Shown piece after piece: positions 23,210 to 64,000 of a DNA stretch of 64,000 nucleotides. A model generated the notes under the pieces. It did not search any database, was not told the DNA's origin, and worked only from the letters and a program-made list of their open reading frames with translations. The translations under genes were made by a program, and so were the position numbers. The DNA comes from Trichosphaerium sp. ATCC 40318 (taxonomy: Eukaryota > Protista > Tubulinea). Numbering within the stretch: position 1 is the stretch's first letter; the number at the start of each line of letters is the position of its first letter. The stretch is taken from NCBI GenBank assembly GCA_038496445.1, contig JALMLS010000531.1, forward strand, positions 124,001 to 188,000, read 5' to 3'.

Positions 23210-23796
23210 GAAAGAAAAAAGTAACAAAAGACCCAAGGAGAAACAAAAATCCTCTTGTTTTGTTTTTTTTTTATTCACCAAAGAAAAGAACGTGTTGTAA
23301 TAAAATTGTAAATACTCGATTGTTCACATAAACCAGCAATAAAAATACATAAGATTAGTAACTATCCAAGTCTACATATAAAATAATAACAAATCATTGC
23401 ACGTTTGCTTCAATCTTCCACGAAACAGTTTTTTGTTTTTTCATTAGTTTAAAAACACTAAGAAATAAGACTTCAAAGAACTTTCCAAAATCAGTTACTC
23501 AGTACCGTCAATCCACATATCTTGTAGCTTGAATTTTCCACTCTCATACCAATCCTTGGATTCACTGCATTGGTTACCATTAACCCATCACTGGTATTTT
23601 TGGTTTGCCTTTTTTCGTATACGTTGCATACTGTGTACACAACCACGGCCGTTTAGTTTCACTGAACTCACTCGGCCTTTAGTTTATATCAATAGAAACG
23701 TCTGCAACTAGTAATATCACATTGTAGTTTGTGTTGTTTACAACAATAAACGCTATTAACCACCAAACAACATATACAAGTTCGGATCAGCAACCA

Positions 23797-24912
23797 ATGG
23801 ACTTCATTACGCTCCCAGTTGAGATAATCACTACTATACTCCTGTACGTCGAGTTTGCACTTCATTCATCTCAAACATGCCATCTCATGCGAGAAATTGT
23901 CCGCAAATACGTTGGATATAGTTCTATCATTGTGAAGTATGAAAGCCAACTATTGACACTTTCTGGAAGCCCTTTGATGAAGAATACGAATATCTACTTG
24001 CATAGAAATATTGCAAGTGATGTAAATCTAAAGGCGTTGGCAAGTGTACACACTATTAAGTTAAAAAGGTGTAGCAACATAACAGATGAGGGCATCATAG
24101 CTTTGACTGGTGTACACGAAATTGATTTGACACATACAAAGGTTACTGATAAGGGATTGAAGGCTTTAGCTGGTGTACATACAATTAAGTTAGAATATTG
24201 TCAAGGAATAACAGATGAAGGTGTCAAAGAGCTTAAAGGAGTTCATTCTATTCATTTAGGGAAAACTAATATTACTGGGGAATGTTTAAAGGCGTTGGCA
24301 GGTGTGCATACTATATTTTTGAATTGTACACCAATTTCTGATTATAATGTGAAAGAGTTGAAAGGAGTTCACACTATTTCATTAGAAAACTGTACCAACA
24401 TTACAGATGACGGTATCAATTCATTAGCAGGCGTACACACTATCAACTTGATTGACTGTATATCTATAACAGATGAGGGTGTCAAGGCATTGGCAGGTGT
24501 ACATAAAATTAGATTATCTTTCTTGAAAACAATTACAGATGATGGCATAATGGCACTAGCAGGTGTACATGAAATCAATCTACTAGGCACCAATGTTACA
24601 GATGAGGGTGTCAAGGCATTGGCTGGTGTACATAAAATCAATTTAGGATACACTGATATTACAGATGATGGTTTAAGGGCCTTGGCTGGTGTGCATACAA
24701 TAAAAATCCCACATTGTCCGTATGTTACGGACTGGGGTATTGCAGCACTTGTTGGTGTTGATACAATTCATATGACTCGATGTCTGAGTGTAGATGGTGA
24801 AGGCTTACTGAAACTTATTGGTGTAAAAAAAGTGGTTTATGGTAGTATTAGTAAACTTATCATTGCTACTTTGAAAAGCAGAGGAGTAATATTGAAAAGG
24901 AGATTGTTTTAG
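23797..24912 (+). CDS. Intronless F-box + leucine-rich repeat protein (about 11-12 LAGVHTIxL repeats)
   Basis: ORF 23731-24912 with ATG at 23797; F-box start FITLPVEIITTILLYV; tandem 22-24-aa repeats ITDEGVKALAGVHTINL. Confidence 0.85.
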   Translation: MDFITLPVEIITTILLYVEFALHSSQTCHLMREIVRKYVGYSSIIVKYESQLLTLSGSPLMKNTNIYLHRNIASDVNLKALASVHTIKLKRCSNITDEGIIALTGVHEIDLTHTKVTDKGLKALAGVHTIKLEYCQGITDEGVKELKGVHSIHLGKTNITGECLKALAGVHTIFLNCTPISDYNVKELKGVHTISLENCTNITDDGINSLAGVHTINLIDCISITDEGVKALAGVHKIRLSFLKTITDDGIMALAGVHEINLLGTNVTDEGVKALAGVHKINLGYTDITDDGLRALAGVHTIKIPHCPYVTDWGIAALVGVDTIHMTRCLSVDGEGLLKLIGVKKVVYGSISKLIIATLKSRGVILKRRLF

Positions 24913-27327: not shown

Positions 27328-29309
27328 TTATATTTCCAAAAGACCAGATTCAAGCCAATCTTTCAAGTATACGCATTTATAAGGTGTAATATTTCCATTT
27401 GGATCATCAGTACATTTATCAGCAACCTTGATAGAAATACATAAGAACTCATGAGCTAACGAGTGAGGCAAAAAAAATCAAAACAAAACCAAAGAAAAAA
27501 GAAAACAAATTTTTTTTACAAAAGACCTTGTTTGCTTTGGTTCTCTTTTATGGTTTGGATAGTTTTTTGTTGTGAAAAAGAACCCTCAAAAATGCGTACA
27601 GGACATGCTCCGCAAGGTGACGAAGTTAAACCATTTTCTTTAGGACTACCTCTAGAAACTTTATAGAGTATCAAATCTGGGTTTTGAGGAGAAGGAAACA
27701 TTTCAATACGACCATCATAAACAAGTGTATGAAGTAAAGTAACAACATCTGCTTCTTGTAATTCTGAAGGAGATTTTGTGTTTAAGTTGTTTCTAACATC
27801 CTTTGCAGACACAAAACCCTAGAAAGAAAAACGTCAAAAAAAATCTTTCAAAAAACAAATTAAAAAAAAAGTCGCATTTGAAGATCGCCATATAAATGCG
27901 ATTGCTGGCATCCTCTCTGGGGAAGGTTTAAACCAACGAAAAGTTTTGTATTGTTTGAGGCGGTGAAAAAAGTGAGAAAATAATCAAACCTCTTTTCAGT
28001 GTTCCAGTGGATTAATTCTAAGTGGGATGTACCTTTAACTTTATCAATTCATAAGTTTCATGACTCAAATGGTCAACAAATTCGTGATCAAATTCAAGCT
28101 CTGCATTATACCAAACACCACCTCTATGATCAGGATGTGGAGTGAGTCTATCTAGAATATATCGCCGCTTTATTTTTGACTAAATAAGACATGAATTAGT
28201 GGGTAAAAAAAAGAAGACAAGTTCATCCAACACTACTGTGGTCGAAAGCAATGGGAAATTTATCGATTTGCTTTGGTCTTGGCCGTTTAATTGTAATTAA
28301 CAAACAAAACGGACTCAAATTATTTTGTAAGAGCAGAAAGAGAAATACACGTGCCTGAATAGATCTGAACGGTTTAATGATTTTATCTTTTGTAAGTTGT
28401 TCCAAGGCTTTATTCAACAAATTACTTCTCATACCAACCTTACGTGTCAATGATCTTTTTAGAATGCCTATAATCGATAGCAAATGTCAGTTGTAAATTA
28501 TATAAATGAGATAACTCTTGACGGCCATAACCAATTCAACTTGTTTTCGTTGGTTTTTTTTTTGGTGGCTTGAAAGAAAACATAGTGTATTTATTGAAGC
28601 TGACCTTGTGTGCCAGTCTCTTCTATATATCTAGATATTAAGGTTAATGTACATACAATACACGGTCATAATTGAAAAAGTAAGAGTAGGTGTTTACCTG
28701 TAGATTGAAAACTTCTCATCTGATAGCTCTCGAATTCTTGTAAAAAAACCCGTTAGAATCAGTTATGAACGTTTTACAGTAGTACTTGTCCCAGTCCGCG
28801 TAAGGGACTAATTTAAATACATTCGCTCCACTCATTGCATCCTAAAATCATCAACTAAAGTTACACAAAAACCACGTGAGAATTGTCTCAACGCTAATTT
28901 TGATTTCTGGAAATTTCGCAAAATCTATGTTTGTTCGCGTATTTTGGTCTGTTTGCTTACTACTAGCATTGTTATACGTCTTTCTTTTAGCAACTAAAGC
29001 CAAACGACGTTAATATTAGTTGAAACAGCGTGCTTTCGTTTACCTGATTGATAGCGTCTCCTCTTGCTTCCATAGAGATGTCTGAAGACATAGAAGCGTT
29101 AAGAACATCCCATAGAGCCCCCTTTTCATCGTTAACAATTAAAAACGTTTATAATGCGCATTAACGAACATTGGGATAGTTGCCGAGCTGGCTCATCTAT
29201 TATTTGTTAGAACAGGCTTATACGGTTGCTCAGTTTATAAAAACCGCGATTTAATACGCACAATTTGTTTTTTGGCAGTTGTAATGGCGTTGCTGACCTC
29301 GTCCGTCAT
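27328..29309 (-). CDS. POLR3F: RNA polymerase III subunit RPC6 (RPC34)
   Basis: GILKRSLTRKVGMRSNLLNKALEQL...IIKPFRSIQ; HPDHRGGVWYNAELEFDHEFV; LLHTLVYDGRIE; C-terminal Fe-S motif SPCGACPVADKC...ITPYKCVYLKDW. Confidence 0.92.
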
Positions 29310-30053: not shown

Positions 30054-32781
30054 ATGTGGAGCGAAACTCTCAAGTGGTACATGCTTTATACGCTATGCAT
30101 ATGTTCAACTGTCCTGGGAGGTACGTTAGCGTATCAATTGTGTCTATATATTTTTTGTAGCTGAAATTGAATTGATGTACAAACTGTTCTTCGTTATCGC
30201 CATTACGCTCTGATTGGAGGGTAATTGAGCGTTTTCAATTTGTCGAAAAAGAAATCAGCAACGCAACTTTGAAACACTCCATCAAAGGCTTTCAAGCGAT
30301 TTTTAATATGTAACTATTGCAATCTAACTCTTTTCAGCAACTCCGATTGGTAATGGAGTACATTTCACAAACAATAACCAAATACTCAAAATAGCACTTC
30401 CAACTCCTGTGACAGAGTATACAGTCACAGCGTGGGTTAACGTTTTGTACGCTACAATCGTCACACAAAAAGTTTTGCTTTTTCAGTAATTCAAAAAAAA
30501 GCAAAAAAACACTTACAAGCCTGCTTCTTGCTTATTTTGGCTAGTGCTGATATTGGAACCAATACCCTTATATCTTCTGCGCCACCAGGAGAGTGCGATG
30601 GTGGATTCCGATCTTCGTTAGAGCAAAACTTCAATGGGCTTGATTCGGAAGGTGATTTTGAACTAAGAAATAATAACGGTCTTGGTAGTTGTGGTCCTCC
30701 ACAAACTATGTATGACGCTGAACTCCTTGGTGGTTATTGGGTACACAATTATTTACCATTCCTTTTGGGAGGGTTTTTTTGAAAAGAAAATGTAGTATGA
30801 GTTATTCTTGCTAACACAGTTTTTTGTTTCGGTTAGAACTTTGTTGCCATATCATACAAGCTATCAAAAATATCTCATTACTTTAAAGGATTTTCAAATA
30901 GTAGTGCTGGTGTTCAAAACGGCGTATTTGCTCCTAATCTCACTACAGTAATTCAATTTGGACCTGGTTTAACGGTATGAGGCTTTCTTTCTTTTTTCTT
31001 AAAGAACCAAATAATAGACAACACAACAAACTCCTTATCCTAGTGTTGGCTTGAGTTTATTTTATTAATGTCTTTGGTGTAGGGTTATATTGATGAGATA
31101 GTTATCTGGGACTCTGCATTAACTGTAAACGAACTTGTTGGTTTAGAGGATTTGTCATTTTATGGCAGTCATCCAGGCGTGAACTCGCACTTCACATTTG
31201 ATGGAGCTAATTATATTCATCGAACAGTATGTCGAGCGAATTACAGCGCTTTAGAGGGAGACCTTGTTGCAACAGCAGAAAGTATCAATGGCGCTGCTCT
31301 ACCATGTGGTACATAACTTGCTTACTTTCAGCGTTTCAAAAAGAAGCTGTAATACAATTTACTAAAACAGTCTAGTTGATGATTCGGCGTTCCCTTTTAG
31401 TCCTACTGCGCCTGCAAATGATCCACCGCTACCTCCTGTATCACCAACAACCGTAGTTCCTACAACTACAGCTCCTACATTCATACCAACAACAATAGCG
31501 CCGCCAATGATATTACCAACAACATTATTGCCAACAACGCTGTCTCCGACAACAACACTGGCGCCAACAACATTATCTCCAACGACGATACCTCCAACAA
31601 CTATGTCTCCAACAACACTAGTGCCAACATTATCTCCAACGACAATACCTCCCACTACATTGCCACCAACAACTTCTTCGCCATCACTCGCCCCAGCAAT
31701 GCCTCCTATGTCCACAACTCCACCAACTACGCTAGTACCTACAGTAGCAGCAACCGCACCAACAGTGGTCCCTTCAATAGTGTCAGCAACTACTTTACCT
31801 CCTACAGAGAACATTGCGGGCGGAGCATCACAACCAACTTCTCCTGATACTCTAGCACCTTTTTCTCTAGATTTTCCAGATGTTCCTACTGGAGAACCTT
31901 TTAATCGAGGTTCTCAGACTACAATAATTCCAGGAGGCTCTCCTCGTCCTCAATCTGAGAGTGTTGAATGTGAAGATGGTACCTCTCAGATACAAGGAGT
32001 GTGTAACATCTCACGTAGCTACCCTATATTCTCAGGTATGTTTGTACCAAACTTAAGGGTTTTTGCACGATGTATTGACTGACTCTCTTAGGAACCGTTA
32101 TCATTGATAAGAACTATACTATTGAATATGGTACTACCAAATATTGCTGTGTTGTAAAATTAACACGTGATTTTGTTTAGATAGAGTAGTGTTTAGTAAT
32201 CTTACTATGAACTTTGCTGATGGTATTGTTCTTGAGGTTACAGAGTGTCCTGAGCTTCTAGGAACGACTACCTTCAATCTTAATGCTACAGAGCTTAAAG
32301 TGTTGCTATTAACAGTACCACCTACATGTATTATAAATCTAGAAAATGTGGAAGTACTAAACAACACAAACAAGGGATGCGCAGTGCAAGGTAAATAATC
32401 GAAATATTTTTATTGAGAACTCACGTAACAGTCTATCAAAAAACAATATTACTACTTCCTTTAAACCTGGCTATGAGTGCCACTGGTTAAAATGCACTAA
32501 ATTTTTTCACAATTTGAAGTTTGTTCTGTTGCTAACTTTTTTCAGAAAATACTGCGCTCTTTGCTGTTTTCTCAAAATGTCCTACTGAAGAAGACGAAAA
32601 CAATGGCACCATGACTATAATTCTTATTGCTGTTGCATGTGTAGTAGCTGCATTAGCTGCAGCTACAGTAGTGGTAGTATTATTAGTACCAAGCATCCAG
32701 AATGCTGTGTTGCCGTTTAGATCTATGCCACCAGAAAGGAGTAATATCATTGGTAGGATTGTAACTGCAGAAGACGCTTAA
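30054..32781 (+). CDS. Type I membrane protein: signal peptide, LamG/ConA-like domain, Pro/Thr-rich stalk, transmembrane helix
   Basis: MWSETLKWYMLYTLCICSTVLG; EYTVTAWV...W.FVAISY...GYIDEIVIWDSALT (LamG-like); PTT repeats in ORF 31507-32082; TM segment IILIAVACVVAALAAATVVVVLLV. Confidence 0.75.
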
Positions 32782-32982: not shown

Positions 32983-33971
32983 TTATACTTTTGCCAATAC
33001 AGCCCTGAATTTCTTGAGTGCTGGATCATCTTTGCTGACCAAACCCTGCTTTGCTTTACGAACTTGTGACACGACTTTATCAAACTTTTTCATATCAGGT
33101 ACTTCAAATACGCCATCTCCATTGATCTTGTTATTTGGCATCTTCTTGTATCGTTGTGCTTGTTTTGTGTCTTTACCCCAACCACATGCCCAAAGTGCAT
33201 CAGGCTCAACAAGAGGATGAATAGAACCTTTGGAATCCAAATAGAATCCACTTTTAAACCCTTGACATCCTGTTTTGTTGATCACTTTACAAGCACCCTT
33301 CAATACCTCAAGTACAGCCGCAAGTGTTGCATTGGCTTTTGGCATTCCTGTCATGACATAAAAGGTTCTTTTGCTGATCGGTTGGTTTCCTAGATCGATG
33401 GATGAGTCATAAATCATAACCAAAGAGAATCAAACAAGTAACATACCTAAACCAGATTTGATTTTTTCTTCAATCCATGCTGTGCGAACTGCTTTTTGAA
33501 TCTTGTCGTATGGTGTCCACCATGTCTTCATTGAGCAAGAATCGCTGATATGAGCACAATAATTTGTACCATTTGGATTTGGGCTGATGATTCCAACACA
33601 TGGTCCCAAACCAGCAACACCACAAGGTTTTGCTATCATAAACTATTAGACTCTATTCCATAAGAATGAAAACTTACGCAATGATTTCATGAATGTGCCT
33701 CCGACACCTCCTCCAACAGTTGCAGGTTTAACTGAAGGCTTCTTTGTACTATCACAAAGAGTGTTAATAATTGGATTTCGCATGATGAGCAATCTACGTA
33801 CACTTTCTCTCCATGAGCTTTCTTTTGAAGCATTTGTTGTTTTCGTTGTTTGGCTTCTTCTCTCATTCGAAGTTGTTTCTCTGTTGGTGGTGCCTTTGTT
33901 GGTTTCTTCTTTTGAGTAACACGTTTCGTTGTCTTGTTTTTGTTTCCAGTCGTTGATCTTTGTTTTGACAT
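32983..33971 (-). CDS. Putative CheD/CNF1-like Cys-His deamidase with a basic N-terminus, copy A
   Basis: 4 exons; spliced core PKPCGVAGLGPCVGIISPNPNGTNYCAHIS; near-identical to copies B and C. Confidence 0.65.
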
Positions 33972-34521
33972 TGTGTTGGTTTTTTTTGAAGCTTGTTGTT
34001 GTGTTGTGTGTTGGTTGTTGTTGATTTTGATTGTTTTACAAGTCAGTGAAAACAAATGATGCGACAACAAATTTTTGTTTTTTTGTTTACTCGATACACA
34101 CTTTGTTACACGTGCATTAATCTCGCGATTTTTAGTGCTACCAACTGGCACTGCCTACATAGAGCGTTATCAACCTATTCAATGGTATATTTGTAGTCAT
34201 ACTAAAACTTTGGTGGGTTAACCACGCTCGCGCTTAACACAAGAACGTGACTAGAAGCCCACTACTATCAATAGGTTGTTAATATTAACTTCTTTATGTA
34301 AAATCTCATCGGGAAACATCGTGAACAACACGAATCTTTACATGAGAAAGTACGATCCCACAAACCGATTTTGTACAATCTAAATAAGGGAAATATCACG
34401 TGTCACTGCGTAATCAACACTTTTGGGATGAAAAATAATACAAAGTTATTTTAGGATTATAGACACCAGTAGCGTTTGATGAATTGCTCGTTTTAAACTC
34501 GAGTCCAGAATCAGAATTAAA

Positions 34522-35293
34522 CTATACAAGTTTGTTAAGGTTTGAGCTTGTACTCATGTCACATACTTGGATAGAAGCACTATACTCCTCGTTGGCACGT
34601 TTAATGCCATTGATTAAATTAGAAAATACTACTGAATACACCTTACTAACGCCCTTCCGTTATGAATACAAGCAATATTCATATTCATTAGCCCGTAAGC
34701 CATATTCATTATTATTCATTCATGAATATTCATGCGCGTTTGGTGAGTCAGGATGTTGAGGAGCTTTTGGTTTGTAGCACCTAGCGATGTTTCAAATGGA
34801 TAGATTCAACAAGTATGTTCTTTGAAAACCGAATAGGAATAGTCAACAGAACACCAAAACCCACAAATCCAGTCAATCAGCCATCAAATTGTACAATTTT
34901 CAACCGTTTACTGTGTGCATGAATAACGAATGAAGTTTTTTAGTCGTGAATGTAGGCTGTATTTGAATATTCAAATTATTCAATCATAACGGAAGGGCGT
35001 TACACCTTACTTGTTTCAGAAAGGTTATATCCATACTGTTCATAGAAACCCTGTATCAGTGATATGCTATTACCATAATCTGTTATTGGAGGCAATACAT
35101 GAGAACTGGAAGCTGTATTAAGCGTTGGTACATTGCAAGAATGACAAAGAATAAACAGTTGAGCATACATCAATCGGGTCATGTAAACTACCAACACCAC
35201 AAAGCTGTTAAAATAAAGCTTGTCTTGCTGTGCTTGAATGTCGGTCAGAGAATCAGTTGTATGTTTTGGCTGCCACACGCTGGCGAGATCCAT
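34522..35293 (-). pseudogene. ORF interrupted by the MITE insertion
   Basis: ORF 35000-35293 stops at a TAA supplied by the MITE end. Removing the MITE and one TSD copy restores the frame for about 39 more codons (SKV|YSVVFSNLINGIKRANEEY...NKLV*). Confidence 0.45.
34647..35002. mobile_element. Non-autonomous hAT-type DNA transposon (MITE), 356 bp
   Basis: Perfect 19-bp TIR TAACGCCCTTCCGTTATGA (34647-34665) and TCATAACGGAAGGGCGTTA (34984-35002); 8-bp TSD CACCTTAC at 34639-34646 and 35003-35010; repeated subterminal ATTCA/TGAAT motifs. Confidence 0.9.
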
Positions 35294-35524
35294 GTTTTCA
35301 GTTGTCTACAAACAGTTTAAAGCCAGGTTTTGGTTTAGGCAATTAATAGCAAGATAACGTTTGTTCCATAGTATTTTCAATATCGGCATTGTACTTTCCC
35401 CATGGTACATGAGATCTGTGAGGGCAATGTCATGAGTACTCAGCCTTGTTTACATTGTTCAGTTTGAGTTTACTCTGAAAAATCCTGCTAGTTTAATCAG
35501 CACCCAACAACAAGATAGACAAAA

Positions 35525-36780
35525 CTGATGTTGATTAAAGTTGTGTTTATTAACAGTATTTACATAATGTATAATTTAGTGGTAAAAAATCAGATGTGCG
35601 TTCATACTTTTGCTAGCACTGGTCTGAATTTCTTGAGTGCTGGATCATCTTTACTCGCCAATGTCTTCTTTGCCTTACGTACTTGTTCGACAACCTTGTC
35701 AAACTTTTTCATATCAGGTACTTCGAATACGCCATCTCCATTGATCTTGTTATTTGGCATCTTCTTGTATCGTTGTGCTTGTTTTGTGTCTTTACCCCAA
35801 CCACATGCCCAAAGTGCATCAGGCTCAACAAGAGGATGAATAGAACCTTTGGAATCCAAATAGAATCCACTTTTAAACCCTTGACATCCTGTTTTGTTGA
35901 TCACTTTGTGAGCGCCCTTCAATACCTCAAGTACAGCCGCAAGTGTTGCATTTGCTTTTGGCATTCCTGTCATCACATAAAATGTTCTTTTGCTGATTGG
36001 ATGATTTCCTAGACGAGAGTGAGTCAAACAATAAACATCAAAAGAAACAAAACGAAGTAATGTACCTAAACCAGATTTGATTTTTTCTTCAATCCATGCT
36101 GTGCGAACTGCTTTTTGAACCTTATCGTATGGTGTCCACCATGTCTTCATTGAGCAAGAATCGCTGATATGAGCACAATAATTTGTACCATTTGGATTGG
36201 GACTGATGATTCCGATACAAGGACCCAAGCCAGCAACGCCACAAGGTTTTGCTATCATAAACTGTTAGAATATATTCCACAACACTTTTTATGAGAACAT
36301 ACGCAATGACTTCATGAATGTGCCTCCGACACCTCCTCCAACAGTTGCAGGTTTAACTGAAGGCTTCTTCGTACTGCGATGAAGTTAGAATACAAAAGAG
36401 TGTAATCAAAGGACGTACACTTTCTCTCCATGAGCTTTCTTTTGAAGCATTTGTTGTTTACGTTGTTTGGCTTCTTCTCTCATTCGAAGTTGTTTCTCTG
36501 TTGGTGGTGCCTTTGTTGGTTTCTTCTTTTGAGTAACACGTTTCTTTGTCTTGTTGGCGTTAGTGCTTGTTCTTTGTTTGTTTGACATGTTTGTTTATGA
36601 TTGTTTTAGATGGGTTGTTCGGTTGTTGTTGTTTAGATTTATGTTTTGATTTTATTTTTTCTTGCCTCAGTGAAATAGTTGATGCTACAGAAATTTCAAC
36701 TTTTTTTATCTTCCTCGATGAACACTTTGTTCCACGAGACGAATTATACTACCCACGAGCTGTAACACGCTATTTGAACA
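35525..36780. repeat. Left arm of a ~1.2-kb inverted duplication (partner at about 42300-43535)
   Basis: Copy B, ~190 bp of upstream sequence and the 3' UTR match copy C in reverse complement (e.g. gaggaagataaaaaaagttgaaatttctgt; gtaaatactgttaataaaca). Confidence 0.85.
35602..36588 (-). CDS. Putative CheD/CNF1-like Cys-His deamidase, copy B
   Basis: Same 4-exon structure as copy A; GVAGLGPCIGII...YCAHI motif; ORFs 35602-36258 and 36406-36588. Confidence 0.65.
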
Positions 36781-37213
36781 TAATAAGCCTGTGGTTACAA
36801 TTATCAAACGGTTGGTTCTGGTTGAGCTTTACTACCCTTTCACTGCAATAAAACCTTTAGTGTAGCTAAACTTAAACCCGTAGTGAGTGTTCTTGGCGTC
36901 TATTATTGATTATGTGAAGATAGCCAAGAGAAACAGCGTGAGCAATCAGTATTAGTTTCATTGTATTCTCCTGTTACACTAGTAAACCCACGTGATTTTA
37001 CCATCTAATAAAATATTTTTGTAAGTCCCAACCTTTTGTTTGCTACGCCTCTCCAAATCAATGAAGGACAATTTTGCCTACTATTTGGACTAAAAGGAGC
37101 TCGACAACACTTTGAAATAGGTTGAAATTTCGGGCCTTATTTGTAAAGTACTCTAATGTATTGTACTGCGTGTGTAATTAAGATTGAAGGTTGTCAGGCA
37201 TATAATATTGTAA

Positions 37214-40200
37214 ATGCGCGTTTCAGCCGTGCTTTCTTGCAGTGGTACGTAAAAATACGATAAATAGCGTATGTTAATAGAGTAGAAGTACAATTTAGCG
37301 CCTACGGACGTAAATTACCATACGGTTATTGGAAGAGCGAAATAAATTGCAAAACATGTATTAACAGCGTTGCTGAACACTATGGGCTTAAAATACTTGA
37401 TGATTTGTACAAAATATCGTCAATAGACATTATCCGCTTTGGAGCTCATGGATTATTGAATCAGTACGTATTTAAGGTCAAAAACGAAAGAAAACCGCTT
37501 TTACCAACCTCGCAAACAAAATTATCTTGTTGAACGGTTATGTATTTATCTAACTTTAGGTACTCTGGTGGGTATTCCACTATGCTTTCTACACTATTTC
37601 CGCGATATAACTGGCAAGAGTTGTCTTTCACGTGCGTGATTTCATTATTCTTAAAAATTGCGTCTTTTTGTTCATTAACTAATTGCAGATCTACTCCACA
37701 TGGCTATACAAGGTCTATTACTAAACAACAAGATATTATAGACGAATTTGCTGAAGATCTAGGCGTGAAGTGCCTTGACGATTGGTATATTGTTAGCGCA
37801 CATGATTTTGAAACAGCTCGTGCAGATGTTCTAAGTGTATACCGAAGGTTGGTTGAAGCAAGCTGAAAACGATACTTACCGCTTCGAATAGGTATGACAA
37901 ATCTACTAAAGATCTCTTGGAGTGTATATATCCAAGTCACGAATGGGTTTCATGGCAGTTTGATGTTAACATTGACTTACGGAATTGGTTCGATAAAGCA
38001 AGTGTTGCACTTGGTGTCAAGGGTCTAGATGATTGGTATAATATATCTATGGTAGAGTTAAACGAATTTAGACGCCAGAGCATTTCACCGCCAGCATTTA
38101 GGCACGTGAATTTACAAGCCATGACCTGTCAAAAGGGTAGACCTAAAAACATACAAATGACTTACCAAGAACCAAGGATACCTCTGGTTGTTTAGGCTTT
38201 TTTTAACTTTGTTGTTAAATCTAATGTAAATTAGGCATATGGGATCACTGTATCAAATGTTAGAAGCTGTATACCCGGAAAAGGAATGGATTGCAGATAA
38301 TTTCGAGTGAGTTAATGCATTAGCTGTCTGTATTTTTTTTATTCTCATTTTTCATTTCTTGCTCATTTGATGTAGTATTGTACCACGTTATCACTGGAAA
38401 GATATATTAAATATACAACAAAGACTTGATACAATTGGCCAAAAGCTAGGTATAAAAATACTGGACGATTGGTGCTCTGTTGGATTTGACGTTCTTTCAA
38501 AGCATGGAGGTGTATCACTCACAGTGAGGTAAAGTTTTAAGATTAGCTTTAAGTAGCACGAGATTCTATTCTGTTTAACTCTTTGTATTAGATTTCGAAC
38601 AATGCGTTCAATGTTAATGTCTGTCTATCCTTGGCATACTTTTGATGACGATTTATTTGTGTACGTGCTTAGCTTCCTTTGTTGTGGTTCCCTGCCTTTT
38701 GTTTTGCTTTCGTTTTTCGTACTTTTGTTGCCAGTGTACGCCTTCTCAAAAGGAGATAAATGTGCCAGCACAAGTTTCTTACCACCAGTAGAATTATAAT
38801 TCTACAAGCGCTGATTATGTTTTATAGTCTATGAAAAACACGTGTTTAAGCAAAAAAAGCTTCGAATTTTGTTGTATTTTATTGTTGAGATGAACTAATT
38901 GTTGTGAGTAGCAAACTACGGGACGGGTATTGGGATAACTTTGAAAATCAACTAAGAAAGTTTAATATGATTGGAGAGTCACTTAATGTACATACTTTGC
39001 GCGATTGGTATGATGTACCATCAGAGAAAGTTATATTTTTTGGTGCTGATCCAGTAGTTAGACGGTACAGTTACAATTGTTTTCTCTTTTTATTCTCATT
39101 TTAATGAAACTAGTTATGGTTCACTTGCTAATTCTCTAAAATCTGTATACCCTTACTTCTCATGGCAAGGATATAATCATGGGTACGTAAAATGATTGTC
39201 ACTGTGAATTATATTATGTAGTTGTTCGCAATAATGTCGTTTTTGATATTTCTCAACATCTTATTTATTCGGGCTGTAGACATGTTCAAAGAAACGGTAG
39301 TGGTTATTGGGCGAACCAATTAAACCAAATGAATTTTATTAAAAGAGCTGAACAACAATTAAGTCTATCTACACCAGAGGAATGGTAAGAACAATAGTTT
39401 TTCTCCATCTTTTTTAACAATTTTGCTCTATTAAGGTATCGAATATCACGTGAACAAGTTGCTGAGTTGGGTCGAGGAGTTGTTTCTTATTTCCCTGCGG
39501 TACTAAAATATTATATTACTTTGATGTTATTGATGTTTGCTATAGTGCCTGAAACAGGTTTACCCGCATTATAAATGGAACTGGCAGACATTTGCTACTT
39601 CAATGAAAAAAGCTTGTCAACGTTCACTTATTGAATCTGTCAATCTTCTACTACCCAATCAAGAGATTAAAGAAGAGCACGATCTTGGCAATACTCTAAA
39701 TGGTGGCGGTAGGGTTACACTGGATATATTTGTACCAAAGTACAACCTCGCCATTGAGTATCAAGGTAAGCCAATTCTAGTGTTTTCTCTTCCTTTATCT
39801 GTTTACACCTTGGTTTAGGAGAGCACCATTACTACAATTTTGTTCAGAACCTCTTACCAACAGCTATATTCTCATCCAGAGATACAGAGAAAATACAAAC
39901 ATGTGCAGCACATGGTAAATAGTAAAACAAACAAAAAACTTTCGGAAATAACCTTTTTGGTTTTTTTCTGTGCTATTGGCTACTTGTTAAGCCATAGCTC
40001 TATCAAATTTAGCAACCGACCAAACTCACGTATTTACTTTTTATTGAAGGTGTGCGCATTGTACCAATCCCGTTCTGGTGGAAAGTTGGAGATTTGAGCA
40101 CTCTAGGCGCTACAATACAACATTATTGTCCTGATATTGACTTGGGATATTCAAACATTAAACCTCTCCTTCCAGAGAGTTTGAAGTCAGGCGGTCGTGT

Positions 40201-40222
40201 AAAGGCCTTTGGTATGCAATAA
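37214..40222 (+). CDS. Six ~70-aa tandem repeats plus a C-terminal PD-(D/E)XK-like (DUF559/Vsr/RAP-like) nuclease domain; start approximate
   Basis: Repeat consensus GYW-x4-N...LG(V/I)KxLDDWY...YGSL...L.x(V/I)YP...W. C-terminus TLDIFVPKYNLAIEYQGEHHY...RDTEK...C...GVRIVPIPFWW; about a dozen short introns. Confidence 0.8.
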
Positions 40223-40686
40223 CTTCAATTTTTTGTTTTGTTGACATGGCAAAAAGACGTTGCTCTCTTTTTTCATCTACTTCTTGACTCGTAAATTCAT
40301 CAAACTCAATGTTAGCAACACTGAATTATTATCTCATCTTATTGTAGATGGATCACAAGCTATAATGACAGCGTCTTCAGATAAATCAGTTTTTGCTTGA
40401 GAAAAGATAATGTTGGATGGTAGCTGCACTCCCTAAAGTTGGTAGATGTTTTAAGCGTATCATCTACACTTCCTTGCTGGTTGCGGATACAAGGTACAAT
40501 ATGCTCACTATCGACACCATAGATTGTGCAGGATTAATCACATAAAAACCCAAGAGCCGTTGATTTACAATCTTCTTCACGCTCTGACATAATAGACGCC
40601 TGGTATTCTGGTAACAACTCAAATCAAGGTAGTATTGCAAGGTAAAGCAAGTGCTTTAACCGGATGGCAAAAACACGTGGAGCCGT

Positions 40687-40902
40687 TTGCTCTGTAAGTT
40701 ACAAGAGGTCAAACTTGGCTTAACATATCAGTGCCTGCCCTCCCTGAGGGACAGGCTATGGCATTTTAATGGTCAATTAGAAGAGCATTCGTATTACGAA
40801 CAAGATAGACTTGAAGATGAGTGTAAGAATTGCTATGATGATGGCCAATTGAACAAGCATTGTTACTACAGTAAAGGTAGAATGCAAGCGCGAAGGTTGT
40901 AA
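40687..40902 (+). pseudogene. Degenerate MORN2/YwqK-like repeat fragment
   Basis: LWHFNGQLEEHSYYEQDRLEDECKNCYDDGQLNKHCYYSKGRMQ matches W-x2-NGQL-x4-Y repeats; two units only and no good start codon. Confidence 0.5.
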
Positions 40903-41150
40903 AAAAAAGAGGAGAAGACTCAGCTACAGTTGGTTTTTCAAAAGCCAAGTGTAAATCGTTTGTGTTTGAGTGACACTTTGGCCATCAATTGATTTGCTAC
41001 TACCCAAACACAGCTGTTCCACATAATGCTGGTTGCAATTATATATGAATAAACTTGGTGTTTTTGTTATTAAAAGATTGAGTAATCGCCTGTCGTTTCA
41101 TACATGTGTTGAATCTCAAGAACAAGTTTGTTTAATGCTAAATCAGCAAC

Positions 41151-41444
41151 TTAAGCGCCTACAGCTACGCAGTGTCCAGTAGTAGTAGTAACGATTGGGT
41201 AGTATATTGGGGTATACTGTGGTTGTACATACACGTATGTATCGTAACGACAACGAACGCTATTCAATCCGAAATGATTTGCCACAAGATCTCCTTTATG
41301 AGGACCAACCAAACAAATAAGCTCATCAACAGTCCTTGGTTTTGCCGCTAGAACCTTCTCAACCGTTCTAGGACCAACACCGTAGATACTTAGCATTTGA
41401 TACTCTAACCATGATTTTCCGTTAGAATACAAAGTAGTTGTCAT
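41151..41444 (-). CDS. Small intronless helix-hairpin-helix protein
   Basis: MLSIYGVGPRTVEKVL...LVGPHKG gives two HhH-like motifs; paralogous to 41508-41732. Confidence 0.55.
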   Translation of the reverse strand: MTTTLYSNGKSWLEYQMLSIYGVGPRTVEKVLAAKPRTVDELICLVGPHKGDLVANHFGLNSVRCRYDTYVYVQPQYTPIYYPIVTTTTGHCVAVGA

Positions 41445-41507
41445 AGTGTTTTCAGTGTGGGGTTTGCGCCTGGATTGAAGGAATTAGAAATTTGAAATGG
41501 AAACTTC

Positions 41508-41732
41508 TTAGAAAACTCTGAAGTACCGTTTTGAAGTCCTGTACTTTATGTGGTACTCATCGTGAATCAATCCGGCTTTCACAGGACCAATATACGTTTC
41601 TAAGTCCCGAATCTTGTAGTATTGGCGAGCGACTAATAGTTTATCAACAGATCTGTGCCCTACGCCATAAATAGACGTGAGACAATCTCTTATTAATTTG
41701 CTTGGGTCGCTGTTTATTGATATGGTAAACAT
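41508..41732 (-). CDS. Small intronless helix-hairpin-helix protein
   Basis: LTSIYGVGHRSVDKLL...YIGPVKA; tandem paralog of 41151-41444. Confidence 0.55.
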   Translation of the reverse strand: MFTISINSDPSKLIRDCLTSIYGVGHRSVDKLLVARQYYKIRDLETYIGPVKAGLIHDEYHIKYRTSKRYFRVF

Positions 41733-42299
41733 GAGGTAACTGAGTTCCTAAGCGTTGGTTAGTTAAGAGCTACGACTAACACACATTCTTTCTTACAGAG
41801 TTTATAGCTTTAGGAGTTGTTGAGGGTTAGTGCAAGTGAGAAATATGATTACTTAAGTTGACTAAATAATGTAACTATTTTTAGTTTAGATATTCTGCGA
41901 ATAATCTCTCAGAGACTTTTTTCGTACAGGACAGTTTTACGAAGTAGCTGATAGGTTTATTCGCATCACCTTACTCTAATGAACGCAACGAAATACTATT
42001 AGAAGAACAGCGCTCTTCGAAAGCGAAAACAGGGTTAAGGGTCCTTAAACCGACGAAGCGTCTCTAGCAGCAATTATCCATTATTTGTTGTGCCACGCAA
42101 CAACTCTTTGGCGGTCACTTGTTCAGAGTACAAACGGGATTGTTCGGCTGTTTCCCTTGGTTATCTTCAATTAATCAGTTTCAGACGCTAAGAATACTCA
42201 CAACAGCTTCAAATTGAGCGATACACGGTTTTTAAACCAGAATACTGCTAAACAGCTTCCATTCGGATTTTCGTTGTAGTAACCTTGTACCGCTGACAT

Positions 42300-43535
42300 G
42301 TTGACAACGTTTTACAGCTCTTGGGTAGTATATTTCGCCTCGTGGAACAAAGTGTTCATCGAGGAAGATAAAAAAAGTTGAAATTTCTGTCGCGTCAACT
42401 ATTTCACTGAGGCAAGAAAAGATAAAATCAAAACATAAATCTAAACAACACCCGAACCCCATCTAAAACAATCATAAACAAACATGTCAAACGAACAAAG
42501 AACAAGCACTAACGCCAACAAGACAAAGAAACGTGTTACTCAAAAGAAGAAACCAGCAAAACCAAAACCAACAGAAAAACAACTTCGAATGAGAGAAGAA
42601 GCCAAACAACGAAAACAACAAATGCTTCAAAAGAAAGCTCATGGAGAGAAAGTGTACGTCCTTTGATTACACTCTTTTGTATTCTAACTTCATCGTAGTA
42701 CAAAGAAGCCTTCAGTTAAACCTGCAACTGTTGGAGGAGGTGTCGGAGGCACATTCATGAAGTCATTGCGTATGTTTTCATTCTCTGTGGAATATAGTCT
42801 AACAGTTTATGATAGCAAAACCTTGTGGTGTTGCTGGCTTGGGTCCTTGTATCGGAATCATCAGTCCAAATCCAAATGGTACAAATTATTGTGCTCATAT
42901 CAGCGATTCTTGCTCAATGAAGACATGGTGGACACCATACGATAAAATTCAAAAAGCAGTTCGCACAGCATGGATTGAAGAAAAAATCAAATCTGGTTTA
43001 GGTATGTTACTTGTTTGATTCTCTTTGGTTATAATTTATGACTCATCCATCGATCTAGGAAATCATCCAATCAGCAAAAGAACCTTCTACGTCATGACAG
43101 GAATGCCAAAAGCCAATGCAACACTTGCGGCTGTACTTGAGGTATTGAAGGGCGCTCACAAAGTGATCAACAAAACAGGATGTCAAGGGTTTAAAAGTGG
43201 ATTCTATTTGGATTCCAAGGGTTCTATTCATCCTCTTGTTGAGCCTGATGCACTTTGGGCATGTGGTTGGGGTAAAGACACAAAACAAGCACAACGTTAT
43301 AAGAAGATGCCAAATAACAAGATCAATGGAGATGGCGTGTTTGAAGTACCTGATATGAAAAAGTTTGACAAGGTTGTCGAACAAGTACGTAAGGCAAAGA
43401 AGACTTTGACGAGTAAAGATGATCCAGCACTCAAGAAATTCAGGCTTGCATTGGCAAAAGTATAAAACGTGATTTCTTACCATTGAACTGGTGCGTAATG
43501 TAAATACTGTTAATAAACAACTTTAGTAATCAATA
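42300..43535. repeat. Right arm of the inverted duplication
   Basis: Reverse-complement similarity to about 35525-36780, including non-coding flanks. Confidence 0.85.
42484..43465 (+). CDS. Putative CheD/CNF1-like Cys-His deamidase, copy C
   Basis: Same 4-exon structure; spliced GVGGTFMKSLPKPCGVAGLGPCIGIISPNPNGTNYCAHIS. Confidence 0.65.
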
Positions 43536-47494: not shown

Positions 47495-49836
<2,342 letters not shown>

Positions 49837-51855: not shown

Positions 51856-54800
51856 ATGCTTCTTCACAGCCTGGTGATCCTATTGGGACTGTTACAGCTA
51901 TTCAGTCACGTGCGGACGCAATCCTTGCCGCTCATTGATAACTTTCATGTTAATACACCCGCGCTTGAAGTTACAATGTCCCAACCACGTGCTGGCATCT
52001 CCACCGTCGATCCAACCATGGGATCTTCAATATTAGGCGGAGAGAGAGATATGCTTGCCCTTTATACAGACGTACGTATATTATTAATTTATACTGCTAA
52101 TTCAGCATTTGTGTTACCCACTTTGCTAAATGAATAATTTTGGTGTTTTTTTGACACTAGGATGTCTCTCATTATAAACTTTTGGGAGTATTATATTTTA
52201 ATACTACTTTGTTTTTTGATTGGCTAGTAGCAGTGATCGACCAAACGTTTTTTTGCTAAAATTAAGGCGATTTACAATATTAATCGTATTGGACAAGCGA
52301 AATGACGATCGCTTGTTTACTTTTGTTGTTATTGCTATTTTAGAAAAATATACGCTAGAAAGAGCCTTTTTCTTTGTCGTTTTCCATCGCACGTGGTCAT
52401 AAATTTCTATCACGTGATCTCTTTGGGGATTTTTTTTTGGTGTAATCGTCATGATCCATATTCGCATATTATAGAACACTTACATCGTATAAGGGTCCGT
52501 CAGGCTTGAGATGTGAAGTCACAGGAAATGCGGATCCTCCACCAGAGTTAATCGTTGAGGTTGGAAGCGACTCTACTGGTTCTTGTACTTTAACATATGA
52601 TGGCATGGACCTAGATCCAAGCGTAGACGCTGGATTAGCTTCTCCTGTAGATTTACTACAATTTGGAGCAGGTGAGAAAGCGCAACTAGAGCATGATGTT
52701 CAACTTAGAAGTTCTTTTATTTTTGCATTTTTTTTCTTCGTTCTGGAAATTTACCTTTTTAATTTAATCTTGCCCTTAGATTGCTGGTTTATCCGAATAT
52801 CAAGCGCGGATGTAGATGTTATGATATCTTGCGAAGCTGAGACGCCTAGCGGACAAGTAGCGACTAGTTCTATACAAACGATGATGCGTATTTTTCAGCC
52901 TGGCGTAGATATTTGTATGCCATTTGCAGAGTCTCTTGATGTATACAGAGATACAAGTATTATTAGATGTACATTTCAAAGCGCTGGAGATGTAGCTCTT
53001 GATGCTACATTTAAATATATATGTGTAGCATCTCCTATATTATCCACAACGGCATGGGAGCCTTTAATTGATGTTCCGCCAAGCGGTGTTTCGATAGGTA
53101 TTTGCTTGGGAATTTTTCTTTATTCTCCCTTTTTTTCCCCTTTTTATTTTTACGGTATGTGGACTGCTTTTGTTAACTTTTCTTCCTTTGTATCTTTTAG
53201 GCGATACTGTGAAAGTCAATTATACTTTTGGCAATTTTGCTACTCTACCAGCGAGAACAATTACTGCAACAGCTTCAATACCAATTGATAGATCTATTGG
53301 ACGAATTATGCAAGCTAGTGTTATGATAATGCCGACGACTCAAGTACAACCTTTTTTTAAAAAAACACGTGCGATTGGATGTTAACAAAACCCCTCTAGA
53401 CCATACCTTTTAGAGTCGATGTCAACCAAATGGACGGAACTGATACGCTTGTTATTGGTCCTGTTGATCTAGGACCTGATGAATTCATTACAGCGATGTT
53501 TGGGGTTGACATTGTAGCTGAAGGAAATCTTGTCATCCAAGGTAGTGTTGATCATGGTAGAGGCATAAGTCAATCCGTGGATGCTGCATCAAGGTAAAGT
53601 ACCGTTTCCAGTTGTTGCCTATTTAAACTGTATCGCGCTTGATTAACAGCTTACGTTTTTTAACAGTCAAATGACGAACATCACAGAAGCTTGTCAACAA
53701 CCATCACCAACAATTATACCTATTGGGAATGTACGTATTACTTAACTTTTCTGAACTTCCTCGTGTATCCTTTCCTAAAGTTATTTAAAGCCGGTGCCTT
53801 CTACAATGCCACCAATGTTTACACCATCAACAATCGCTTCGCCAGCGACTATTAATACACCTTCTACCATAATTTCACCGAGGTAAGTTGAACCACAAGC
53901 GTACACTAGGATGTTTTCTAACTTTAACAACAGCACTACTATTACACCTTCGACTATCAGCGCACCAGCTACAGTTTTGACACCATCAACTATACAGACA
54001 CCGTCAACTGTAGTATCACCAGCAACAGTAGCAACACCTTCGACAATCAATGCACCATCAACAGTTATAACGCCAACTTCTGTTGTTACGCCTTCAACGA
54101 TTGTCACACCTGGCACAGTACAGACGCCTTCAACTATAAATTCGCCGGCAACTGTAATAACACCTTCAACGATCAATGCACCAGCGACAGTTGTGACGCC
54201 AACCACAATAAACGCACCAGCAACGATCATCACGCCAGCTACTGTAGTGACTCCGTCAACTATCAATACACCTAGTACTGTGCAGACACCATCAACAATA
54301 AGCTCTCCTTCAACAGTAGCTACACCTTCAACGGTACAGACACCATCAACAGTTGTCACACCTTCAACGATTATTGCACCAAGGTATGTTTTCTCACTTC
54401 GATTCTTTTTTTTTTAATACGTTGATTTAGCACTGTTCAGACGCCTTCAACTATTAATTCGCCTGCAACTGTTATAACACCATCAACGATTAATAGTCCA
54501 TCAACAGTACAGACACCAAGGTAAAAACGTGACCTATCACATGATTGATTGTATCAAGAAAAAAAAACTTACAGCCATTTTAGTACAATCCAAACACCGT
54601 CAACGATCATCACACCTGGAACAGTGGTGAGCCCATCGACTGTGAACGTACCTTCTACGATGCTTACACCATCGTCTGTGATGGTCCCTTCTACTTTGGC
54701 AACGCCTTCAACTTTTGCAACACCGTCTACGATAAACAATCCGTCGACTGTTATAACGCCTTCTACGGTTAACACACCAGCAACAGTGGTTACGCCATCG

Positions 54801-57800
54801 ACACTAAATACACCATCAACAGTTCAGACGCCAAGGTAAACAAACATCGAAGTATATCTTTTCTAAGCCTAGCATTAGTACGATACAAACACCGTCAACG
54901 ATCATCACGCCTGGAACAGTGGTGAGCCCGTCGACGGTGAATGTTCCTTCTACTGTGATTACGCCATCGTCTGTGGTTGTTCCATCAACAGTTGCAACCC
55001 CTTCAACAATCCAGACGCCATCTACGATTATCACACCTTCATCAGTTGTGAGTCCATCAACAGTTAATGTTCCTTCAACGATGCTCAACCCATCAACTGT
55101 GATGACACCTTCTACCTTGGCAACGCCTTCGACAATTCAGACACCGTCAACTGTGATAACACCGTCTTCGGTTGTGAGTCCAGCAACTGTTAATGTTCCT
55201 TCAACGATGATCACTCCGTCAACCGTGATGACGCCTTCCACTTTGGCCACGCCTTCTACGATACAAACGCCATCAACAGTGATTACACCATCAGCAGTAG
55301 TTAGTCCAGCGACGGTAAATGTACCTTCGACAATGGTTAATCCGTCAACTGTGGTGACTCCATCTACTTTGGCAACACCTTCAACCGTTATGGTTCCATC
55401 AACTTTGGCTACTCCTTCAACGATCCAGACGCCTGGAACAGTGATCACACCGAGTTCAGTGGTGAGTCCAGCTACAGTGAATGTACCTTCGACAATGATC
55501 ACACCTTCAACCGTTATGGTTCCATCAACTTTGGCTACTCCTTCAACGATCCAGACACCATCAACCTTGGCAACGCCTTCTACAATTCAGACACCATCAA
55601 CAGTGGTCACACCTTCTTCGGTAGTGAGTCCAGCAACAGTGAATGTTCCATCGACAATGGTTACACCGTCGACAGTGATGACACCTTCCACTTTGGCAAC
55701 GCCTTCGACAATACAGACACCGTCCACAGTGATCACACCTAGTGCTGTACAAACACCATCTACATTGAGTGTTCCATCAACAGTAGTTACACCTTCTGCA
55801 ATTCAGACACCTTCAACAATTGCAACACCATCCACTATCGCAACACCATCTACTGTTCAGACACCAAGGTACAAATAATTATTTATGTAACACATCGATT
55901 AACTTTATTGTAGTACAATACAAACTCCATCAACGATTATCACACCTTCGTCTGTTGTGAGTCCATCAACAGTGAATGTTCCATCGACGATGGTTAATCC
56001 TTCAACTGTGATGACTCCTTCAACCTTGGCGACGCCTTCGACAATACAGACACCATCTACGATCATAACACCGAGTGCTGTACAGACACCATCGACGTTG
56101 AGTGTTCCTTCGACTGTTGTCACACCTTCAGCGATACAGACACCATCAACTGTTGCGACACCATCCACTATTCAGACGCCATCTACAGTGCAGACGCCAA
56201 GGTAATTATAGAATGTTTTTATTTGTTTGTGTTAACTTGTTGCTAGTACTATACAAACACCGTCTACAACGATCACACCGTCTTCAGTTGTATCTCCAGC
56301 CACAGTGAATGTCCCATCGACAATGATCACGCCATCCACTGTAATGGTACCTTCAACGTTGGCAACTCCTTCAACGATACAGACACCATCAACAGTGATC
56401 ACGCCTTCTTCGGTAGCAAGTCCGGCAACCATTAATGTGCCATCGACAATGATCACACCTTCAACGGTGATGGTACCTTCGACTTTGGCAACCCCTTCAA
56501 CTATTCAGACGCCATCTACAGTTATCACGCCGTCTTCTGTTGTGAGCCCGGCAACTGTAAATGTTCCATCGACAATGGTCAATCCATCAACAGTTATGAC
56601 GCCCTCGACTTTGGCAACACCTTCGACCATTCAGACGCCATCGACAACTATCACGCCTGCATCTGTTGTTAGTCCTGCAACTGTAAACGTACCTTCGACT
56701 ATGATTACACCGTCTACAGTGATGACACCATCTACTTTGGCAGCACCGTCAACGATCCAGACACCTTCGACTGTGATAACGCCTTCTTCAGTTGTTAGTC
56801 CGGCAACTGTTAATGTTCCATCGACAATGCTGAATCCGTCAACTGTGATGACTCCTTCGACTTTGGCAACGCCTTCGACCATACAGACACCGTCCACAGT
56901 GATAACACCTGCATCAGTTGTTAGTCCTGCAACAGTGAATGTACCTTCGACAATGATCACGCCGTCGACTGTGATGACTCCTTCAACTTTGGCAACGCCC
57001 TCGACGATCCAAACACCGTCTACAATTATAACACCAACGGCAGTAGTGAGTCCTGCAACAGTGAACGTACCTTCGACAATGCTGAATCCATCAACTGTGA
57101 TTACTCCTTCCACTTTGGCAACACCTTCTACGATTCAAACGCCATCAACAACTATAACTCCAACGGCAGTTGTTAGTCCTGCAACAGTCAATGTTCCGTC
57201 GACAATGCTAACTCCTTCTGCTGTTGTTGTTCCTTCAACTGTTGCAACACCTTCGACAATACAGACGCCATCAACAGTGCAGACGCCAAGGTACCTTTTT
57301 TTTTTATAATTACAATAAACTAATGTCGAATGTAGTACAATCCAAACACCGTCAACTGTTGTCACACCATCGAGTGTTGTTAGTCCATCAACAGTGAATG
57401 TGCCTTCGACAATGATCACCCCTTCAACTGTGATGACTCCATCCACACTGGCTACGCCGTCAACGATTCAGACACCTTCTACGACAATAACACCAACAGC
57501 TGTTGTGAGTCCTGCAACAGTCAATGTTCCTTCTACGATGCTCACTCCTTCCGCTGTGGTTGTTCCGTCTACTGTTGCTACACCTTCAACAATCGCAACA
57601 CCGTCAACAATCGTTGCTCCATCAACAGTGGTGACTCCTTCGACGATCAATGCTCCTGCAACCGTCTTAACGCCATCCACTATTAGCACACCATCAACAG
57701 TGGTAACACCATCTACGATAAACACTCCGTCAACGTTGCAGACACCAAGGTAAATTCTCAGTATATCCTTTTCTTTTGATTATAGCTAACAATCTTGTCA

Positions 57801-63800: not shown

Positions 63801-64000
63801 TTCCACTATTGCAACCCCTTCAACTATTGTGGCTCCTTCGACAGTGATCACCCCTTCAACAATAGTTGCACCGTCCACTGTGGTAACACCATCAACAATC
63901 AGCACTCCATCAACAACGATAACACCGAGTGCTGTGCAGACACCATCAACATTGAGCGTTCCTTCAACAGTTGTTACACCTTCAGCAATACAAACACCAT
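51856..64000 (+). CDS. Giant secreted Thr/Pro/Ser hexapeptide-repeat (mucin-like) protein; continues past the window
   Basis: Signal peptide MLLHSLVILLGLLQLFSHVRTQ; globular N-terminal region (ILGGERD...TYDGMD); repeat exons from about 53790 all splice in frame. Confidence 0.85.
53790..64000 (+). repeat. Coding 18-bp tandem repeat (T-h-x-T-P-S) with a 126-bp/42-aa higher-order unit
   Basis: Recurrent unit TIQTPS-TVITPS-SVVSPA-TVNVPS-TMxxPS-TVMTPS-TLATPS with varied synonymous codons. Confidence 0.95.

Follow-up and report, generated by a model that had tools for sequence, protein, structure and literature searches.

What kind of protein is encoded by the three near-identical spliced genes (copies A, B and C) that lie close together in a 64,000-nucleotide stretch of the Trichosphaerium sp. 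ATCC 40318 genome (contig JALMLS010000531.1, positions 124,001 to 188,000; hereafter the window), and do the Cys and His residues at its most conserved point make it an enzyme? A preliminary description of this DNA had read the product as a protein deamidase with an active site like those of CheD and CNF1. Our analyses show a gene family that is spliced, expressed and under constraint, without detectable relatives, and we are highly confident that it is a real orphan family. As to what the protein does, the best explanation as a whole, which we hold tentatively and at somewhat less than even odds, is a lineage-restricted, intracellular basic protein that would bind a polyanion through Lys-rich tails and a metal ion through its Cys/His cluster.

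The three copies share one exon–intron model, so that the triplicated four-exon gene of the preliminary description is indeed present. Copy A runs from ATG to TAA on the minus strand (32983-33971), with exons at 33802-33971, 33678-33748, 33447-33632 and 32983-33389 and introns at 33749-33801 (53 nt), 33633-33677 (45 nt) and 33390-33446 (57 nt). Copy B, also on the minus strand, extends from ATG to TGA (35602-36588; exons 36419-36588, 36303-36373, 36066-36251 and 35602-36008, with introns 1 to 3 of 45, 51 and 57 nt), and copy C occupies the plus strand from ATG to TAA (42484-43465; exons 42484-42653, 42699-42769, 42816-43001 and 43059-43465, with introns of 45, 46 and 57 nt). In all three, the exons measure 170, 71, 186 and 407 nt, adding up to 834 nt or 277 codons plus stop, and every intron is of the GT..AG type, 45-57 nt long, the split codons being those for V, P and G. 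Copies A and B are direct repeats with a spacing of 2619 nt; copy C is inverted with respect to both and stands head-to-head with B, 5.9 kb apart. Nucleotide identity among the copies amounts to 88-97%. The duplicated unit consists only of the gene and ~0.2 kb of upstream sequence and has no terminal repeats. The upstream blocks of copy B (36589-36769, minus strand) and copy C (42308-42483, plus strand) are 95-97% identical to each other and probably contain a common promoter and 5' untranslated region.

Evidence that these gene models are used came from a single protein. Intron 3 of copy B is open in frame and creates an uninterrupted open reading frame (ORF) of 218 aa (35602-36258, minus strand), of which positions 35605-36258 served as the stop-free reference for a word-indexed search of 5.8 billion proteins. 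One match was retrieved: P0001, an unannotated, transcript-derived protein of 247 aa from the MMETSP marine-protist transcriptomes. It is 88% identical to the copy B ORF overall and ~96% identical outside a 19-residue gap, which corresponds exactly to intron 3 retained in that ORF. Across intron 2, P0001 reads ...FMKSLPKPCG..., and this KSL-P-KPCG junction implies that the acceptor chosen in the preliminary description, ...TTTATGATAG, identical in the three copies, is the one in use. The peptide quoted there was likewise correct, including the stretch ...GVGGTFMKSL-P-KPCGVAGLGPC(V/I)GIISPNPNGTNYCAHIS. At the position of junction 1, P0001 has V-TKKP; it thus confirms introns 2 and 3 and is consistent with the model for intron 1. 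P0001 is identical to none of the window copies and lacks 27 residues of exon 1, which implies a fourth member of the family, encoded by this organism or by one closely related to it. The genes are therefore expressed, in this organism or in a close relative. In copy B, all three intron lengths are divisible by three and intron 3 lacks an in-frame stop; if retained, this intron would add 19 residues in frame, whereas intron 3 of copy A contains an in-frame stop.

Comparison of the copies shows that they have been kept alike in an uneven manner. Exon identity between copies is 87-99%. In intron 1, B and C are identical at 44 of 45 positions and A and B at 23 of 53; in intron 3, it is A and C that are nearly the same (56 of 57 positions), with A and B sharing 30 of 57. 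This mosaic, in which B equals C in one intron and A equals C in another, points to gene conversion or recombination between copies. The conservation of the exons beside such diverged introns is far beyond chance. With in-frame codons summed exon by exon, the ratio of non-synonymous to synonymous substitution rates (dN/dS) between copies is 0.10-0.23, at dS values of 0.15-0.24. Exons 2 and 3, which carry the Cys/His motif, are the most constrained, with 0-2 non-synonymous differences between copies, and exon 1, which encodes a basic tail, is the least constrained (proportions of non-synonymous and synonymous differences, pN 0.09-0.12 and pS 0.14-0.17).

These values bear on whether the copies might be decaying or selfish DNA, that is, pseudogenes or transposable-element cargo with no function for the host. 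Their local amplification could be taken that way, as could the element that lies between A and B, a 356-bp sequence resembling a miniature inverted-repeat transposable element (34647-35002), with perfect 19-bp inverted repeats at its ends, found a single time in the window, against a chance expectation of 0.02 matches. However, reading frames and splice sites are intact in all three copies, dN/dS is low, a matching transcript-derived protein exists, the duplicated unit ends without terminal repeats, and neither PHROGs nor viral contigs gave any match. We consider this explanation largely refuted, and it is the least probable of those weighed here.

P0001 also served as the whole-protein query in the search for relatives, the exons being queried separately. 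With phmmer, 1.84 billion sequences representing ~15 billion proteins yielded no match to P0001 other than P0001 itself, which had also been the only match to the copy B ORF in the word-indexed search of 5.8 billion proteins. No relatives appeared in IMG/VR viral contigs, in 185,579 prokaryotic species genomes (GTDB) or in JGI metagenome contigs, and scans of P0001 and the exon pieces against Pfam, NCBIfam and PHROGs yielded no family match. Beyond a similarity to wnt (E=0.16), the one row that the family scans produced came from PADLOC. The PADLOC model PDC-M02B, a candidate defence family, matched P0001 residues 177-245 (E=0.006, 13.5 bits), a region lying on the Lys-rich C-terminal helices and equivalent to window positions 32986-33190 in copy A; this match is probably compositional. 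Five sequence searches of the PDB at E<=10, with P0001, exon 3, exon 4, the copy B ORF and the family alignment profile as queries, gave only chance-level matches (Fab, thiolase, glucokinase, ryanodine receptor and binding proteins). One unannotated transcript-derived relative in all the collections searched agrees with the earlier claim that the family is undescribed.

The suggestion that accompanied that claim, of a possible domesticated toxin, found no such backing, and neither did an origin from bacteria or viruses: these searches gave no viral, prokaryotic or metagenome relatives, and the genes carry spliceosomal introns. The gene is a native eukaryotic one, with spliceosomal introns, a GC content like that of its surroundings (0.40 in the exons, near the 0.37 of the window) and ordinary eukaryotic neighbours; its description as an amplified, spliced, intracellular eukaryotic gene is supported. 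Orphan families are frequently met with in protists that have been little sampled. The present one resembles the multi-copy orphan genes of protists in being restricted to a single lineage, locally amplified, homogenised by gene conversion, short and basic, with low-complexity ends. Those genes form a descriptive class and not a functional family, and here the core domain is strongly constrained.

The composition of the protein is distinctive. P0001 has a pI of 10.0; its residues 1-48 include 11 Lys and no acidic residue, and 12 of its last 42 residues are Lys or Arg. In copy A, the corresponding N-terminal tail, encoded by exon 1 (33802-33971, minus strand), is rich in Lys, Arg, Gln and Thr and has no hydrophobic core. 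The maximum Kyte-Doolittle mean over 19 residues is 1.18, so that neither a hydrophobic N-terminus nor a membrane segment is present, which implies that the protein has no signal peptide, as the preliminary description had held, and no membrane span. After a Gly-rich linker, five of the six Cys of P0001 fall within 30 residues (P ~0.004-0.008 under random placement). The pattern C-x7-C-x13-C-x-H-x4-C, which contains GLGPC...CAH and maps to exon 3 of copy A (33535-33624, minus strand), is kept in all four sequences (A, B, C and P0001). AlphaFold2 models reached a mean predicted local distance difference test score of 33.9 when run on a shallow alignment and 36.0 for the sequence by itself, too low to judge the fold; both of these low-confidence models display the same mixed alpha/beta secondary-structure pattern. 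A Foldseek search of the PDB with the better model, itself unreliable, gave no match at E<=0.001 and template modelling (TM) scores of at most 0.20.

From these features, the following organisation may be proposed. Of the 277 residues, those at the N-terminus would form a tail rich in Lys and probably disordered, and those at the C-terminus Lys-rich helices. A Gly-rich linker would join the tail to a putative compact alpha/beta domain of ~150 residues, at the start of which four Cys and one His stand close together. The three copies derive from local duplication, one tandem and one inverted, with purifying selection and gene conversion keeping them alike. The basic tails may bind a polyanion, for which nucleic acid, nuclear or nucleolar, is the most likely candidate. 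The Cys/His cluster would more likely hold a metal ion, presumably zinc, stabilising two Gly-rich hairpins, than act as a catalytic Cys-His dyad of the CheD type; the crowding of five of the six P0001 Cys into 30 residues, within the most constrained exons of a protein without signal peptide, suggests such a site. Considered on its own, this binding and metal-site mechanism, read from sequence, has roughly one chance in three in our estimation. Several points weigh against it. The arguments for it are drawn from composition and from the way residues cluster, and no homologue, domain match or usable structure speaks for nucleic-acid or metal binding; the conservation of any single Cys or His among four near-identical sequences tells little; one Cys of the P0001 cluster (position 74) is Asn in A, B and C; and a Cys-to-His spacing of 16 residues on a predicted hairpin would also fit a catalytic dyad.

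This last point leads to the deamidase proposal itself. It holds that the protein would be an enzyme of the CheD/CNF1/YfiH fold, an amplified intracellular Gln/Asn deamidase or related amidohydrolase in which a Cys62-His78 dyad (P0001 numbering) would modify Gln or Asn residues of an intracellular target reached by means of the basic tails; the databases contain no intermediate from bacteria or viruses. The fold common to CNF1/YfiH-like cysteine hydrolases is an alpha-beta-beta sandwich, and they have a triad of Cys, His and Ser or Thr (PMC7022378). In CheD the triad is C27/H44/T21 and in NTAN1 it is C75/H92/S69, the third residue lying six positions before the Cys, and in CNF1 a backbone carbonyl takes its place (PMC7022378). 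In the Trichosphaerium family, the Cys-to-His spacing is 16 residues in all copies, as the preliminary description had stated, and L-G-x-C-(V/I) followed by this His resembles the ...LGSCV... of the CheD that we retrieved for comparison, in which the His is at +17. Moreover, both low-confidence models would place Cys and His on two strands of one hairpin, and nowhere is the gene more constrained than in the motif stretch. Negative sequence searches still leave room for the fold, given that NTAN1 could not be recognised as similar in sequence to any other protein until its structure became known (PMC7022378).

For direct comparison we used a CheD (L002:6801-7460) of Cupriavidus metallidurans CH34, whose megaplasmid encodes it in the ORF that follows cheR; this ORF is recognised by Pfam as CheD (PF03975) at E=9e-30. 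It was reached from the E. coli che operon through a tblastn search of plasmids with CheR, which led to the unannotated Cupriavidus megaplasmid. The alignment built from it contains 43 sequences, and its listed relatives are all beta-proteobacterial with at least 60% identity, making for a narrow profile. The Pfam CheD model covers the part after the His; the hidden Markov model (HMM) derived from the 43-sequence alignment includes the hairpin from Cys to His. Every sequence-level test of the assignment came out negative. Using hhalign, the family alignment matched the CheD alignment with a probability of 0.21% and with a different Cys paired. The CheD HMM, searched with all filters off, did not report P0001, whereas it reported 934 of 2000 shuffled sequences, and Pfam CheD gave no match at E<=10. 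Against E. coli YfiH (purine nucleoside phosphorylase, DUF152), hhalign returned a probability of 0.14% over 16 columns outside the motif, and Pfam likewise found no match. The five PDB searches retrieved no CheD, NTAN1, CNF1, BLF1 or YfiH chain at E<=10. CheD and YfiH were the direct comparators; the toxin members CNF1, BLF1 and DNT were covered by the general searches, where none surfaced as a named match.

Around the motif, on which the sequences were anchored, 26 CheD columns have a conservation of at least 90%; P0001 matches four of them (L, C, G and H), and the window copies additionally match the CheD Gly at -2. For the third triad residue, P0001 and the window copies have Val at -6 and Ala at -5, with no Ser or Thr at either position, whereas in the CheD alignment the conservation of Thr reaches 100% at -5 and 58% at -6. 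The likeness to CheD therefore comprises L-G-x-C-(V/I), a His 16-17 residues later, probably on the next strand, and a domain of similar size and mixed alpha/beta character. By contrast, there is no profile similarity, the spacing is 17 in CheD versus 16 here, and CheD has the conserved Thr before the Cys and conserved residues around and after the His that are missing from this family, which is eukaryotic and spliced, carries long basic tails and has no chemotaxis context. NTAN1 offers a precedent, being likewise intracellular and eukaryotic and having been assigned to its family by structure after sequence had failed to do so, but its spacing is 17 with Ser at -6, in contrast with 16 and Val at -6 here. 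Finally, three more Cys crowd the same 30 residues, which would suit a metal site better than a dyad. The assignment goes back to a five-residue resemblance without support from any tool, and we judge it improbable. If it were true, eukaryotes would have CheD-fold enzymes of two families, NTAN1 being the first, and protists a new family of enzymes that modify proteins, through which their protein deamidation could be approached.

The same cluster could serve an enzyme of another kind, for instance a cysteine hydrolase or transferase of undescribed fold in which the nucleophile would be one of the Cys in the cluster. In favour of this, the Cys and His are under strong constraint and lie in Gly-rich loops, and no known fold can be assigned to the protein. 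However, positive evidence is lacking, no family match of any kind was obtained, and five possible ligands in 30 residues are denser than a typical active site. We regard this as unlikely, and as slightly more probable than a deamidase.

One similarity did recur among the results of the tools, weakly, and it would make the protein the degenerate C-terminal half of a ROK-type sugar kinase or regulator (ASKHA fold) that has kept Gly-rich phosphate-binding hairpins and a partial zinc motif. It is the sole recurring one: a PDB glucokinase (2qm1) matched P0001 residues 30-77 at E=2.1, hhalign aligned E. coli NanK in the same register (P=0.023, 38% identity over 42 columns), and a profile of four E. 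coli ROK proteins (NanK, NagK, Mak and NagC) gave P=0.027 over 51 columns. The top Foldseek rows obtained with the unreliable model were also actin-fold and sugar-kinase proteins. In these alignments, P0001 residues 28-78 are placed opposite two successive Gly-rich hairpins and a C-x-C of ROK proteins, with order and spacing kept. Nevertheless, 46-57 of 2000 shuffled sequences score as well, which places the similarity at chance level (P ~0.025), and the comparator was picked after the first match had been seen. The profile brought no useful lengthening of the alignment and no gain in score, Pfam ROK gave no match at E<=10, and the TM-scores of the structural matches did not exceed 0.20. The zinc ligands of ROK proteins (His, Cys, Cys, Cys), invariant in the four E. 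coli members, are for the most part not kept: the His column is Ile here, and the first Cys column is Cys in P0001 and Asn in A, B and C, with a different spacing to the last Cys. The N-terminal ASKHA domain has no counterpart either, since a Lys-rich tail precedes the 51-column alignment instead of the two-domain architecture of ~300 residues. A ROK relationship seems very unlikely to us, more so than a deamidase. The lineage-restricted basic protein with polyanion-binding tails and a metal-binding cluster thus remains our preferred reading.

The surroundings of the three genes are those of an ordinary eukaryotic chromosome region, with a MORN-repeat protein (10759-11769), a CCCH zinc finger (12903-13226), an LRR_6 protein (23731-24912), an RPC34-like exon (27519-27818) and a protein kinase (48333-49263); scans of the window detected no tRNA and no Rfam match. 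The MORN-repeat protein has no close relative among 5.8 billion proteins (best match 33% identity), suggesting that the whole genome is poorly represented in public data. Next to copy A, an ORF of 191 aa made of Thr/Pro-rich PTT repeats (31507-32082, plus strand) is mirrored on the opposite strand by an ORF rich in Gly and Val. Several ORF pieces without a Pfam match, at 37534-39815 (plus strand) between copies B and C, probably belong to a single gene as its exons; one module, with ...LDDWY... at its end, occurs twice in them, and another, which closes with ...LAIEYQG, follows further on. At 41154-41732 (minus strand), a pair of short ORFs that lie side by side and resemble each other share the motif ...SIYGVG.R..., and one of them shows a weak match to a helix-hairpin-helix domain (HHH_5, E=0.008, under the Pfam cutoff). 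Towards the end of the window, a long run of ORFs at 53900-64000 (plus strand) is almost wholly composed of Pro/Ser/Thr-rich repeats of the type PST(V/I)xTPS. Its GC content is 45%, versus ~37% elsewhere, with a strong excess of C on the plus strand, and each ORF ends in ...QTPRY followed by a short gap. This run has the appearance of a single giant mucin-like gene interrupted by short introns, and the PTT-repeat ORF near copy A is probably a second mucin-like gene.

The novelty of the family is, at present, one of distance in sequence space only, and no new mechanism has yet been shown. What the locus does provide is a cleanly defined, expressed and selectively kept domain with no relative other than its own members among the ~15 billion predicted proteins covered through their representatives, together with a small and tidy case of local duplication and gene conversion in a protist genome. 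Orphan domains of this kind are the raw material for solving the structures of unknown folds.

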